From Octopus sinensis (taxonomy: Eukaryota): a stretch of DNA of 64,000 nt. The DNA lies in contig NC_042998.1 of the NCBI RefSeq assembly GCF_006345805.1, positions 194,122,001 to 194,186,000 on the forward strand. Reading direction: 5' to 3'. The notes under the pieces were generated by a model. That model saw nothing but the letters and a program-made list of their open reading frames with translations. It was not told where the DNA came from and searched no databases. The position numbers and the translations under genes are program-made. Every line of letters starts with the position of its first letter. Position 1 is the stretch's first letter. This document shows, piece by piece, positions 7,180 to 48,475 of this stretch.

Positions 7180-8040
7180 CAACAAGGCCAAAGCCAAGGC
7201 TGTGTGGAATCTTCAGGACATTTATAAAGAGAAAAATAGTCTTACAGCTGTTTCTGGGATATTAGGGATATCCCTTCATCAGAGACGATGTCAGATGGTT
7301 AAATAGAGGGAAATATGAGAGTTCAACATAAGAAGTTATTTTGGAAATGGATGGAAATGAGGAGTATAGAGGGAAATAGGAGAATGAAAGTAGGAAAAAT
7401 ATATAAATATGTTATAGTTGCAGTTCTATTGTCCAAGGGAAGTGGTGTGTAGAAGTGGTAGAAATGCTTCATGTCCATGGTGTGTAAATTCCAATAGGAG
7501 TTCATATTTTGTCATCACAAATGGAAAGTGTGGAGAGTGCTGTTCATTCGAAGGGGTCTTGTGGTGTAAATTGAAATTTGAGAATGTAGTGGTAGTATTA
7601 AGTGGATAGAGAGGGAGAAGATATGTATATGTTAAAATGAGGAGAAGGGTCAAAAGGAGAAGGTGAGGAAAGAAGGAAAGTAAGAAGAGAAAATGGAAAC
7701 AAGAAGAGAAAATGTGAAAAAAAATTTTTAAGTGAAAAAGTGAAAGAAATTGAAAAAAGGTGTGTTAGCTGGTGGTCAAGATATTATGAAGAGGGATGGG
7801 AGAGGAGTAGGGGAGGGATAGGGAGAGACAAAATGTAAGGAATGGATATGTGTGAGGAGTATGAGGAGGGGTTATATGTTAGAATGACACTAAGGGATGG
7901 GTACAGAAAAAGGTATAGAGGAGTGGGGATTCTAAAGAGAATAGTAAACCTCAAAACGGAAGGGAAGAATACTAAGATACAATGGTCATATTTCTATAAA
8001 TAGACATATGTGTATATTGTACTGGCGAATTTGATAGTCT
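7180..8040 (-). mobile_element. Penelope-like element 3' region / pseudo-LTR
   Basis: Low-complexity pyrimidine-rich 3' region ending in a hammerhead motif. The same motif context follows a GIY-YIG C-terminus at 41400-41900. Confidence 0.6.
7239..7286 (-). ncRNA. Minimal type-I hammerhead ribozyme motif, canonical core
   Basis: Minus strand reads gtct CTGATGA a GGGATAT-cccta-ATATCCC a GAAA cagctg TA agac: stem I 4 bp, stem II 7 bp, palindromic stem III, GUA triplet. Confidence 0.85.
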
Positions 8041-8049
8041 GGATTGAGG

Positions 8050-8510
8050 AATCAGAGAGAAACATAGACTAATCTACCGCATCTCTAACCTCTCCTCTGA
8101 CAGTACTACCTCCTCCACTCCTGAGAATAATCCCCACAATGTAACTGCCGTCCTGGGACCATCTGCCCTCTACAAACCCATTGCAGAAGCTCTGGCGTAA
8201 TTTATAAATGCATCGTCCTCAACACGTTACTCACTTTTACAACCATATATATAGGATCAACTATAAATTTTAAACAGCGATATGCCGCGCATCTTAATTC
8301 TTTTAGATACGGGAAACACAGTAAATCCACAACCCGCGCCAGTCACATCTCAAAAATAGAAATATTCCATATATCTTGTCATGGTCCATAATAGACCCAG
8401 AGCTTCCATACCAAGGTCAACGCTCAGCCTGGAAGTTATGCCTAAAAGAGGCATTCTACATATTAAAACACAACTCTTCAATACTACTAAATAAATACAA
8501 TTAGGCCCTA
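8050..8510 (+). mobile_element. Decayed PLE GIY-YIG endonuclease fragment (second family)
   Basis: GVIYKCIV...IYIGSTINFKQRYAAHLNSFRYGKHSKSTT, followed by a W.LCLKEAFYIL...LLNK-like segment. Confidence 0.75.
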
Positions 8511-9139
8511 GGTACATGCAACCACCGCTGTTTTCATACCTTCAAATTTTCTAGTGTATATATTGTGTGTGTGTATGTGCGAGTGCGTGCGTGTGTGTGT
8601 GTATGTGCGTGTGTGTATGTAAGTAGATTTATCATTATATGACCTTTTATTTTAGTACACAAACGCATGTATGAGGGTTTATGATATATTTCCCTGCTGT
8701 AGATTCGTATTATCTTTTGATGAGTTTTTGACGGGAACTCTGTTGTTCAGCTATTTATAGATTAAAAATAAAATAAAATAACTTTATCCTTTACGAGGTA
8801 GAGTATGATATCAAATTTTCATCCCCTATGATAACTTTTCGCTTCCCTCCCCGTTCCAGTCACCTAAATGATTCTCCTTTATAAACTCCAGACTTAAGAA
8901 ATTAAATCACTCTCTGACCGAAGTTCGGCAAAGAGTCATGCAATGGCACATACTTGGATTTTTTAAACTGCTTTGAAATATATAATTCGTGCATATATTC
9001 ACCTGATGAAAAATTTATTTCGCATGATGCAATAATTCTATTCATCAATAAAAAAGCACGTCTGAAACAGCTGTAATGAGTGAACCACATCCCATCCGTT
9101 GTTATTTGTTTATTTTTCACCTTACTCAGAACCTGCAAT

Positions 9140-10175
9140 TAGCGTGGATCTGGAGTCTACTGAGTGCAGTACAATTGGTGCAACAATGTCGTAGAGAATG
9201 GGTAGACATCTAGGAGAAAGCGACCTGTTTCCAGAAGAACAAAAGGAATGCTGCAAAAATTCATGGCTGTAAAGATCAGTTATTGATCAATAAAATCATA
9301 ACTGAAGACAACCGAACGAAAAAGAAGGATCTAAATATGGCTTCGATCGATTACCGAAAGGCTTTTGACTGTATCCCCCACACATAGATCTTGGAAACAC
9401 TAGTTATGGACATGAGAGCACCACCTATAGTAAAACATATTAAACATGCCATGAATAAATAGCAATAAAGTTCTGCAGCTCCAAACGAAAGAGGGACTCA
9501 TAAGAACTAAAGCCATCCTCATGAGAAGAGGAATAATCCAAGGAGACTCTCCACTCCTTTTCTGTCTGGCACTGATGCCTTTAACTGACTCGCTAAACAG
9601 AACTGGTTGTGGATAAAACTGTTACGGAAAAATAATCAACCATCTCTTGTAAATGGTTGATCCAAAACTGTATGATGCAAATGATAAACAGCTAAAAACA
9701 TTACTACAGACAGTGCATGGATTTACTAAAACAAATAAACATGAAATTCGGCTTAGAAAATATACCAAAACAACCTTAAAAAGAGAGGAAAGCTAGTTAA
9801 GAGTAACAATGTCACACTAGATAAAGAGAATAAAACAAGTTATAAACTATGACTTAATTTTTCCTCTCACACCGTCTCCGATGAAGGGATATTGTTATTA
9901 ATTAATATCCTAGAAACAGCTGTAAGACCTTCTATCTATAAATGCTCTAATATCTATACAGCCTTGTTTTTTTTATTTCATTACGCAAAAAATTCATAGA
10001 AACCCAGATATAGAAATACTTAGGAATCAATGAACTAGATAGGCTCAACACACACAAATAAAAGAGAAGATAAGGAAGGAATACAGTAGACGAGTTAGAT
10101 TAATACTTAAGACAGAGCTCAACGTGAAAAACAAAATAATAGGTATTAATACTTTAGGTGTCCCAGTTAAAAGTT
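9140..10175 (+). mobile_element. Decayed R4/Dong-like LINE RT fragment, interrupted near 9840-9990
   Basis: FPEEQK..C, GCKDQLLINKII, IDYRKAFD.IPH, IRRGIIQGDS, and after the interruption RRVRLILKTELNVKNKIIGINTL.VPV. Contains stops and frameshifts. Confidence 0.8.
9874..9928 (+). ncRNA. Hammerhead motif, U4C core variant, in a PLE pseudo-LTR piece
   Basis: gtct CCGATGA a GGGATATT...AATATCCT a GAAA cagctg TA agac. Same family as 7239. Confidence 0.75.
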
Positions 10176-10329
10176 ATATTTACACTTTTTTATAGTTCTT
10201 ATTGAGCTCTTTTCTAATGAATTCGAGATATGTGTTTGGTTCAAAGAAGTAAATATTACCTGTTTTGTCCACAATTACATGTAGTTTATCCCATTTTTGA
10301 ATCCGGTTGATAATATCTTTGAGTTACTG

Positions 10330-46399: not shown

Positions 46400-46960
46400 G
46401 TATCGCCATCTCTATGTCACGCTGGTGAGACCCATATTGGAGTACGGGATTCAAGCCTCTTCTCCTTATCTCCTCAAAGACATACATAATCTCGAGAGAG
46501 TCCAGAAGCTGGCTACCCGCATGGTTCTTGGTCTCAAGCATTTGTCTCATGAAGAAAGGCTGAAGACGCTCGACCTTTATTCTCTCGAAAAACGACGACG
46601 CCGTGCTGATCTCATTCTCGCTCACATCATAAGCGGGAAGTGTAACCTCTCGAAAGAGCTGTTCTTCACTCCTGCTCCAGAGCGTGGGCTGCGGGGTGAC
46701 TCCGAAAAGCTCTATCTACTACGATTTCATCTCAATCGAAGGGGAGGGGCATTCCCCGTCCGGGTTGCGGATCCGTGGAATAAGCTGCCGGACGAGATAG
46801 TGAAGATGCCGACGACCGCTCGGTTCAAAGTCTCTCTTGACCGGAAATGGCCTGAACTCTTTGTATGACCACCCTCCCTGTACATAACTCCCTGTCCCCC
46901 TACATGGCCTTGCTTTTGCTTTTTGAGCCAATAAAAATTGAATTGTATTAAACTGAATCT
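46400..46960 (+). mobile_element. 5'-truncated CR1-clade LINE, same family as 3072-3957
   Basis: ORF 46425-46868 is nearly identical in peptide to the C-terminus of ORF 3157-3849. Same 3' UTR and GAATT tail. Confidence 0.93.
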
Positions 46961-47406
46961 CTCTAAATGTAACCCCTCGTAAACTGAGTTCCTATTGGTA
47001 TATTCTCCGATTGTCTTCTCGTAGCATATATTTTGAAAATGAACATATGTGTGCGTATGTATATTGTGTCTATATGTCAATAGCTGCTTTAATGAGTATC
47101 TGTGTGTGGCTGTGTTTGTGTGCGCGTGTGCGTGAGAAATGACCCAGAGTGTTTTAAATGTACAGACCTTGCAAATCAGCCGTTGATCTTGTAAATTTTA
47201 CTTGAAACCGCAAAGAACCGTATCTATTTCAAAATGAACGTGACGTCAACCATAATCATTTTCACCATACTCGCTTTCTTCATACATTATGAAACTCTGT
47301 GTGTGTGTGAGTGTGTGTGTGTGTGTGTGTGTGGTGTGTGTGTGTGTGTGTGTTGTGTGCGTTGTGTGTGTAGGTGTGTGCATATATGTATGAATACATA
47401 TAAGAT

Positions 47407-47698
47407 TGTTCCTTCTCGAGCCACGTCTGGCTCATAAGGGCCGGTTTCTCGGTTTCCTTGGCGTACAGGTTCCCCACCAGGACGGGACGCCGATACGTCG
47501 CAGGTGAACTGCAAGAAGCAGGAGGAAAGAGTGAGAGAAAGTTGTGGCGAAAGAGTCAGCAGAAATTCATCATTACCTTCTGTCGGAGCCGCGTGGAGCT
47601 TATGTGTTTCGCTCATAAACACACATCGTCTGAGATTCGAACCCGCGATCCCTCGATCGCGAGTCCGCTGCTCTAACCACTAGGCCATGTGCCTCCAC
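47407..47698 (-). mobile_element. SINE family C, tail type 3 (V-domain-like), with 14-bp TSD
   Basis: Homologous to 21470. TSD AATACATATAAGAT at 47393-47406 and 47699-47712. Confidence 0.88.
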
Positions 47699-48219
47699 AA
47701 TACATATAAGATACATGTATAGGTGTATGTTTGTGAGTGTGTATGCATATATGTATGTATGTTTGTATAACCATGATATTGTTGGATTGTAGTTCTTAGC
47801 CAGGATGAGCTTTATATGTTAAACCGTAGCTAACAGCTGTACCTTGATCTATCAACCATGAGGCACTTTCGATACTGCAGCTGTTAAGTGCTTTATATAT
47901 TTGTCAGAAAGATTTTAAACTAGGCTTGAATGAAAACTAAAATGATACCAAACACAAAATTATCAAATATTTCTTAGACGGTGAACGGTAATAATAGCAC
48001 GGTAAAAATGACACAGGTAAAAATGGCACAGATGCAATAAGCTTACTGGCACAACAAGCTTACTGAAATATACACTATTAGTAAAAGAAGTAGAATAAAG
48101 TTTTTACGTATGTATGTATATGTTTATATGACGCTATGTATATAGTCACCATCTATACCTATCTATCTATCTATCTATCTATCTATCTATCTATCTATCT
48201 ATCTATCTATCTATCTATC

Positions 48220-48475
48220 TAGGGGAGAATTCACAAAAAAATACAAAATGTGTGTAGTGGCTAGCGATATAAATATATATATATATATATATATATATCG
48301 CTAGCCACTACACACATTTTTTCTCTCCTTGTTTCTTTCTGTGTTCCTTTCTGTGGAAGAGCGTAGGCTCGAAAAGTAAAAGACTTATTCTATTATTGAG
48401 CGTTATACTAATACATCTGTTTGTTTTCTACACCACCTGTCTTCGTCTTTTGTATTTTTTGTGAATTCTCCCCTA
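48220..48475. mobile_element. Rearranged pseudo-LTR-like element with nested inverted repeats and an A6U hammerhead-like motif (48347-48382)
   Basis: Outer IR TAGGGGAGAATTCACAAAAAA.TACAAAA, inner IR AATGTGTGTAGTGGCTAGCGATATA around (TA)n. Motif cttt CTGTGGA a GAGC-gtag-GCTC GAAA AG TA aaag. Confidence 0.7.

Follow-up and report, generated by a model that had tools for sequence, protein, structure and literature searches.

Hammerhead-type motifs in foldback and solo units of an Octopus sinensis locus and their likely derivation from Penelope-like elements

A 64,000-nt stretch of Octopus sinensis DNA (assembly GCF_006345805.1, contig NC_042998.1, positions 194,122,001 to 194,186,000; hereafter the window, numbered from its first letter) contains short inverted repeats and solitary units that a sequence-only reading had taken for hammerhead ribozymes of families derived from Penelope-like elements (PLEs). 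Are these motifs hammerheads of the PLE type, and by what route did opposite-strand pairs of them arise? The window is AT-rich (G+C ~36%) and dense in microsatellites, and all copy and family counts given below refer to these 64 kb. The units are probably 3'-terminal PLE fragments, or else short non-autonomous units mobilised by the enzymes of PLEs. A unit of ~115-155 nt would carry a minimal type-I hammerhead of the PLE type, 40-95 nt upstream of its 3' end, and a foldback would be the product of a PLE insertion in which two 5'-truncated copies were joined head to head with their 3' ends outward, often in (TA)n. An extra tail on one arm may reflect two alternative reverse-transcription start sites described for PLEs, and a working ribozyme would act in sense-only transcripts, two copies pairing through a palindromic helix III.

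Hammerhead-type motifs and their excess over chance

The window was searched with a descriptor of the minimal type-I hammerhead in which an unpaired base was allowed independently on each side of helix II. A stricter descriptor (unpaired base on both sides of helix II or on neither) returned only family A (7239, 9874 and 41443); hand parsing of the foldback arms showed that it missed most motifs because it forced the unpaired base on both sides. Chance expectation was taken from 100 dinucleotide shuffles in 1-kb blocks, scored with the identical relaxed descriptor. Five zero-defect matches, belonging to three unrelated families, were observed against 0.04 expected, and three matches to the canonical core CUGANGA against 0.01; the reversed window sequence gave none. 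Matches with one defect (1 observed, 1.5 by chance per window) or two defects (12 observed, 16 by chance) did not exceed chance, so weaker motifs cannot be judged by the descriptor, and the shuffle test by itself supports only the zero-defect matches.

These five were a solo motif of family A and both arms of two foldbacks. The family A motif at 7239-7286 (-) (unit 7195-7302, core CTGATGA) is laid out as GTCT CTGATGA a GGGATAT..ATATCCC a GAA ACAGCTGT A AGAC, and its minimum-energy fold contains helices I and II around an open core. Complete motifs with core CTGAAGA lie at 19033-19093 (-) and 19195-19255 (+) in the 19001 foldback, and motifs with core GTGAACA at 32368-32418 (-) and 32496-32546 (+) in the 32285 foldback. 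The latter read TTTGTCA GTGAACA g GTCGC..GCGAC GAA AATATT T TGACAAA, with 7 bp in helix I, one bulged G, 5 bp in helix II (closing pair G-C), and GAA followed by the palindrome AAUAUU. All conserved core positions (C3 U4 G5 A6 N7 G8 A9, G12 A13 A14, A15.1-U16.1 and an H17 other than G) were found in the 7239 motif and in both 19001 arms, and in the 32285 family with the exception of a paired swap to G3-C8. Families A, 19001 and 32285 share the type-I order, a helix I of 4-7 bp and a helix II of 4-9 closing pairs. An unpaired base between A9 and 10.1 and a G10.1-C11.1 pair occur together in family A (7239) and 32285; the 19001 motif has G10.1-C11.1, but bears its unpaired base solely on the 3' side. 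Helix III palindromes are ACAGCUGU, ACUCGGAGU, ACUCUGAGU and AAUAUU. The motif coordinates of the sequence-only reading agreed exactly with independent parses. An ATG at the start of helix II in the 19001 motif opens a 20-codon frame (19209-19271 (+), mirrored on the left arm); in a published lizard PLE the open reading frame (ORF) also starts at helix II (PMC11167929).

Weaker motifs were parsed individually. Of the solo motifs proposed earlier, the one at 7239 is complete, those at 9874 and 41443 are decayed copies of its family, and those at 38958 and 48347 are doubtful. The motif at 9874-9928 (+) (unit 9845-9998, core CCGATGA) has one defect, U4C, and that at 41443-41494 (-) (unit 41383-41522, core CCGATAA) has two, C4 and A8; both have G-U in place of G10.1-C11.1. 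Over ~110-150 nt the three copies of family A share 75-82% identity, the 9874 and 41383-41522 copies being 82% identical to each other, and the 3' end of the latter abuts (TA)n at 41311-41384. The decayed motifs of the 11193 foldback (11230-11269 (-) and 11351-11390 (+)) have core CCGACGA, helix II ACG GGAA CGT, helix III ACTCTGAGT and A17, with A-U at 10.1-11.1 and no unpaired base. Both arms carry C4; the left adds a mismatched helix II (CAT for CGT) and the right GAGA in place of GAAA (G14). Since the descriptor cannot rescue this family from chance noise by tolerating defects, its support comes from the independent model described below.

Two of the six families fail as hammerheads and are regarded as doubtful. 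Half-motifs of the 22305 foldback (about 22402-22433 (-), 22446-22477 (+) and 22493-22524 (+); cores AUGAAAA, UUGAAGA and UUGAAAA) each contain a bulged base, a good helix II (GTTGC AAGAC GCAAC) and GAA AATT; they have no helix I in cis and fail the descriptor at up to two defects. A 47-nt duplication in this repeat makes the sole tandem pair, of a doubtful motif. The solo motifs at 38958-38993 (+) (unit 38890-39150, core CTGTAGA) and 48347-48382 (+) (unit 48293-48538, core CTGTGGA, helix II GAGC GTAG GCTC) belong to one family and are 85% identical; both have U in place of the invariant A6, and each shows a further defect. (TA)n lies ~95 nt downstream of the first copy; the second has lost the helix III palindrome and has (TA)n on both sides. 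A further weak candidate, absent from the earlier list, lies at 5439-5501 (-), with helix I GCCGA/UCGGC, three extra bases before helix I, core CUGAAAA, and GAA followed by AAGCUU.

In 2014, PLE minimal hammerheads were described in which helix I is short, helix II is long, accompanied by an adjacent unpaired base and usually has G10.1-C11.1, and helix III is a short palindrome; the same work reported pairs on opposite strands, 100-700 bp apart (Cervera and de la Pena 2014, PMC4209133). The window motifs agree in the order of parts, in the 4-7 bp of helix I and in a long helix II accompanied by an unpaired base; families A and 32285 also have G10.1-C11.1. Their helix III is again a short palindrome, implying use as dimers. 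Their occurrence mostly as solos with some opposite-strand pairs, and in many divergent families per genome, is likewise as published. They differ in the extra 3'-side unpaired base of helix II in family A (and in the control loci below) and in the unpaired base of the 19001 motif, which is on the 3' side only. Judged by sequence, most of the motifs are supported as hammerhead-type with the published architecture of PLE minimal hammerheads. Core variants included, minimal hammerheads of PLE repeats, whether solitary or in opposite-strand pairs, have been known since 2014; no octopus examples were found in the literature searched, and PLEs are present and recently active in Octopus vulgaris (PMC13282606).

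Penelope-like remnants, control loci and an independent model

The window was searched by tblastn with 120 PLE proteins containing reverse transcriptase (RT) and endonuclease domains. A decayed endonuclease remnant was found at 8125-8570 (+) (best E=1.6e-20), where a CNCR..CPL..C linker is followed by GIY-YIG; the ORF at 8131-8388 matches Pfam GIY-YIG (E=2e-4). A second endonuclease remnant (40074-40483 (-), best E=3e-17, 193 query hits) lies 205 nt from the second copy of the 32285 family, and two RT remnants stand head to head at 10183-10383 (-) and 10378-10881 (+). PLE remnants lie 0.2-1.3 kb from five units and are contiguous with no hammerhead. An exhaustive protein search with the endonuclease ORF returned proteins of ~700-800 aa matched at their C-terminus; a word-indexed homologue search with this 86-aa ORF returned none. 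Aligned relatives of the closest protein show a GLYRDDGL RT motif, the CNCR..CPL..C linker and a GIY-YIG domain of the YIGLTE type, a layout that on this alignment is canonical for a PLE. The RT domain of these proteins was not recognised by Pfam, so they are identified as PLE proteins by the YRDDG and GIY-YIG motifs that the alignment shows; queried against the PDB by sequence and by profile, they gave no match.

Contigs from other animals carrying PLE proteins served as control loci, and the zero-defect descriptor was run on them unchanged. In one (L004), a hammerhead lies 86 nt past the PLE ORF. In another (L005), two full-length ORFs stand head to head, each with a hammerhead on its own strand 38 nt beyond its 3' end. 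A third (L003) has three hammerheads, two of them on opposite arms of a ~590-nt foldback; 42 nt past the hammerhead one arm meets (TA)n, and the other arm continues through the identical 42 nt and ~60 more before (TA)n. In the control hammerheads helix II is flanked on either side by unpaired bases, a feature shared with family A, and helix III is ACTCAGAGT or ACTCTGAGT (also given as ACUCAGAGU or ACUCUGAGU), which recurs in the 11193 and 19001 repeats; the 11193 repeat and the L004 hammerhead have an identical helix III. The contig of the closest PLE protein (L001) has no hammerhead and no DNA similarity to the window. The proposal of a PLE-derived origin is supported by the RT and GIY-YIG remnants and by control loci that share the hammerhead type, the foldback, the one-sided tail and the (TA)n target. 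Separately, one-sided tails from different samples (L003 7630-7688, L004 about 6442-6496 and L005 about 7630-7698) have a common motif, approximately GCTCTGC..GCATYGARCACT, which the 19001 tail matches only loosely (CCTCT..ATATCGAGGTCTC).

A covariance model, R1, was built from five control hammerheads only, located beside PLE ORFs or, in one case (L006), inside a PLE-related gene model, and was run unfiltered on both strands of the window. Its E-values are rough, yet the ranking is telling: five of the best six matches were both arms of the 11193 and 19001 repeats and the 7239 motif. In order these were the right arm (18.3 bits, E ~0.009) and left arm (17.0 bits, E ~0.02) of the 11193 repeat, the left arm of the 19001 repeat (16.4 bits, E ~0.03), the weak candidate at 5439-5501 (-) (14.9 bits, E ~0.09), the right arm of the 19001 repeat (13.7 bits, E ~0.2) and 7239 (13.2 bits, E ~0.3). 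R1 did not pick up the 32285 family, as expected from its different core and helix III, and missed the 22305 copies. On a 21.7-kb Octopus bimaculoides control it gave nothing below E=0.5. Several interspersed repeats are common to that locus and the window (75-90% identity); the locus contains none of the hammerhead families. The patterns of family A and 32285 were also sought in two metagenome scans, without a match.

Insertion structure of the foldbacks

Four inverted repeats were examined: 11193 (11193-11427; 117-nt arms, 97% complementary, 1-nt central spacer), 19001 (18997-19292; ~135-nt arms, 96% complementary, 17-nt spacer), 22305 (22303-22623; 138-nt arms, 93% complementary) and 32285 (32287-32627), whose arms enclose five copies of a 16-nt tandem repeat (32404-32483), the unit of which is the reverse complement of helix I plus core. 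They have no mutual similarity. The claim of four unrelated repeats, each with a complete motif in both arms, stands as to the repeats; the motifs are complete only in the 19001 and 32285 arms, the 11193 arms having one or two defects each and the 22305 copies lacking helix I. An assembly artefact is unlikely as the source of the foldbacks because their arms have diverged by 3-7%. In all four the hammerhead sense strand runs from the centre outward (left arm antisense, right arm sense on the + strand), so that the 3' ends of two head-to-head copies face outward.

The ends of the units were then compared with published insertions. The distance from H17 to the end is ~42 nt in 11193 and 19001, 64-74 nt in family A and 88 nt in 32285; in the control loci, ~30-42 nt separate H17 from the microsatellite or tail. 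The left arm of the 19001 repeat runs directly into (TA)n (18894-18996), and the right arm is followed by 77 nt (19293-19369), presumably a one-sided tail seen in a single copy, and then by (TA)n at 19370-19427. The right end of the 11193 repeat also abuts (TA)n. The 32285 family has two copies, the first a unit at 32236-32627 (32222-32641 with its duplication) and the second at 39607-39869. A 51-nt extension occurs on the left arm only in both copies (32236-32286 in copy 1). Copy 2 repeats the outer ends and the left-side tail of copy 1; its arms are unequal (52 and 110 nt) and its hammerhead is cut inside helix II. A tract of (TA)>=6 touches 3 of 13 unit ends (11193, 19001 and 41443) against a baseline of 4.3% per position.

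PLE insertions are described as inverted, 5'-truncated, head-to-head copies with an optional tail of 30-40 bp at one end and a bias towards microsatellites such as (TA)n (Craig et al. 2021, PMC8557442). The tail has been explained by two adjacent internal RT start sites; in a lizard PLE these lie ~85-92 nt past the hammerhead cut site, and insertion proceeds without cleavage (Frangieh et al. 2024, PMC11167929). The window units resemble these insertions in their head-to-head copies with 3' ends outward, the tail on one arm, (TA)n targets, a duplication of non-fixed length and a hammerhead tens of nucleotides from the end. They differ in having longer tails (51 and ~77 nt), in being cut to ~130 nt so that the whole insertion is a ~300-nt palindrome, and in the arms of two repeats meeting almost exactly at the centre. 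Spread as palindromic units, as had been proposed, is unneeded, since head-to-head 5'-truncated copies are the published PLE pattern.

Whether the foldbacks might instead be miniature inverted-repeat transposable elements (MITEs) of a DNA transposon, with only a coincidental likeness to hammerheads, is addressed most directly by the 32285 family. A check set beforehand found no DNA-transposon signature of terminal inverted repeats and target-site duplications at this unit. Copy 1 is flanked by an exact 14-bp target-site duplication, TATATTTATACAGA (32222-32235 and 32628-32641), and its left terminus, TGTACTTGCATAGC, is not an inverted copy of its right terminus, GCTGCAATTGT, which rules out a transposon with terminal inverted repeats for this family. 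The elements are short, AT-rich and palindromic, the 19001 repeat can be read as flanked by a TA dinucleotide at either end, and Rfam reports no hammerhead, all as MITEs would lead one to expect. Against this, zero-defect motifs are ~100 times commoner than in shuffles, R1, built independently, selects the same sites, and the PLE remnants and matching control loci oppose such an origin, which is extremely unlikely.

The foldbacks had also been viewed as back-to-back hammerhead dimers. A foldback transcript contains one sense and one antisense copy, however, and the hairpin of ~135 bp into which it is predicted to fold (-232 and -238 kcal/mol) far outweighs the hammerhead fold (~-14 kcal/mol), so the ribozyme would be buried in such RNA. 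The dimer idea is sound for two sense copies: homodimers predicted for family A (7239) and 19001 contain an intermolecular helix III (8 bp in the 7239 dimer), with dimer minus two monomers at -11 and -12 kcal/mol. Cleavage by published PLE minimal hammerheads is poor even in dimeric form (PMC4209133), and in one case it required the element's PLE protein (PMC11167929). The near-perfect ~135-bp hairpins that read-through RNA would form raise the idea that these are host-adopted hairpin-RNA loci, small-RNA precursors whose inverted layout is kept by selection. The arms are indeed still 93-97% complementary, but such identity is expected of young insertions anyway, and the Rfam microRNA matches in the window are microsatellite artefacts; we consider this reading very unlikely.

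Several observations weigh against the units being PLE insertion products. The descriptor was relaxed after inspection of the data and, although the shuffles were scored by the relaxed version too, some tuning bias remains; the E-values of R1, as noted, are rough. Rfam hammerhead models gave no match in the window at the gathering score, none at E<=10 among the 150 of 206 window matches listed and none at E<=10 on 7150-9990, a miss that in our reading weighs little because a genuine helix III is part of what Rfam models expect. None of the hammerhead units directly adjoins an intact PLE ORF in the window, the hammerhead sites expected just 3' of both endonuclease remnants have decayed past recognition, and the neighbourhoods of 19001, 22305 and 32285 copy 1 contain no PLE coding remnant. 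The 11193, 19001 and 22305 families are single-copy here, so their ends and tails cannot be confirmed. The minimum-energy fold of 19001 differs from the hammerhead fold, and the AAUAUU helix III of 32285 is too weak to show in the predicted dimer. Finally, all three family A copies start ~30 nt upstream of their hammerhead, which resembles a fixed 5' end more than random truncation.

This last point bears on the possibility that the units are dedicated short non-autonomous elements with a fixed 5' end, SINE-like (short interspersed nuclear element) or retrozyme-like parasites of PLE enzymes, in which the foldback itself may be copied. Alongside the common start of family A, all hammerhead units are similar in size (about 115-155 nt), both 32285 copies have identical outer ends with the tail on the same side, and the 11193 and 19001 arms meet near the centre; animal retrozymes have also been argued to be non-autonomous PLE derivatives (bioRxiv 10.64898/2026.07.22.740005). 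Metazoan non-LTR (long terminal repeat) retrozymes are tandem sense arrays from which circular RNAs arise (PMC7229834; Cervera and de la Pena 2020); the window elements are like them in carrying hammerheads of type I within short non-coding repeats that are presumed to rely on PLE enzymes, and unlike them in occurring as inverted pairs and solos. No tandem sense array of any hammerhead family, the metazoan retrozyme hallmark, was found in the window. The unequal arms of 32285 copy 2 fit independent truncation or a later deletion, two or three copies per family cannot establish a fixed 5' end, and the control loci build the same foldback from autonomous PLE ends. Dedicated elements are accordingly a possible but doubtful explanation, and PLE-derived 3' fragments or units mobilised by PLE enzymes remain the preferred one.

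The G3-C8 family, neighbouring features and implications

Positions 3 and 8 had been reported to change together among families (C-G, U-A and G-C). C3-G8 is the rule in the window, and the G3-C8 of 32285 is the only solid change, counting as one event because its two arms are copies of each other. U3-A8 occurs in one of the three copies of 22305, a doubtful motif, the other two having U-G and A-A. The proposed unusually broad covarying core thus reduces to one solid family, and U3-A8 had been published in 2014 as a natural variant in Schistosoma Cercyon PLEs (PMC4209133). A laboratory C3G/G8C double mutant partly restores cleavage, also in a PLE hammerhead (PMC11167929); no natural G3-C8 hammerhead was reported in the literature searched, which is not proof that none exists. 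Like these variants, the 32285 family retains a Watson-Crick 3-8 pair in altered form; unlike the laboratory mutant, its G3-C8 is a natural sequence in a mobilised family. The 32285 arms differ at two motif positions, one in loop 2 and one an A-U to G-U change in helix I; these differences fit constraint, in a sample far too small to prove it. That 32285 is a natural hammerhead in which the C3-G8 tertiary pair was swapped to G3-C8, still cleaving and in a PLE lineage active in octopus, would be a speculative and rather unlikely reading. The A6-to-U family, which lies between (TA)n tracts, has been copied at least twice; this agrees with the published result that PLEs can insert in vitro without ribozyme cleavage.

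At 32217-32235, the 32285 unit comes directly after a GTAAGT, itself 3' of a proline-rich 114-aa ORF (31904-32248), and this could be an exon end with its 5' splice site. The ORF at 42780-43136 (+) has a strong match to the Paired-box (PAX) domain (Pfam E=4.6e-18, profile positions 63-108 of 125) and is probably a Pax gene exon; retroelement debris may therefore sit in or near Pax introns. To the right of the 11193 repeat and its (TA)n, the ORF at 11752-12126 (+) resembles by eye the C-terminal part of a Pif1/Helitron-type helicase, and was not reported in a Pfam scan of 135 ORFs. The longest inverted repeat of the window (13303-13675 / 13922-14293; arms 247 plus 125 nt, 94-95% complementary) is without a hammerhead-like motif. 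Reverse-transcriptase and endonuclease fragments of long interspersed nuclear elements (LINEs) are also present; the best relative of a 390-aa LINE ORF was an O. bimaculoides protein (77% identity), and an exact-protein look-up with a window LINE ORF gave no match. Sub-threshold Rfam matches to mir-297, mir-466, mir-3149 and similar families (for example at 45132-45204, 42011-42081 and 48239-48326) were rejected as artefacts, all lying on (TA)n/(TG)n-type microsatellites or their palindromes.

For annotation, this means that a short AT-rich palindrome next to (TA)n in cephalopod DNA can represent the scar of a PLE insertion and not a MITE, and scans based on Rfam will overlook the ribozymes of such scars. 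The G3-C8 family offers a natural test of the 3-8 pair, which has so far been probed mostly by designed mutants. Were the reading of 32285 as a still-cleaving hammerhead true, then together with the twice-copied A6-to-U family at 38958 and 48347 it would mean that natural data show the 3-8 pair to be selected as a pair, and that PLE-type mobilisation can continue without a working ribozyme.

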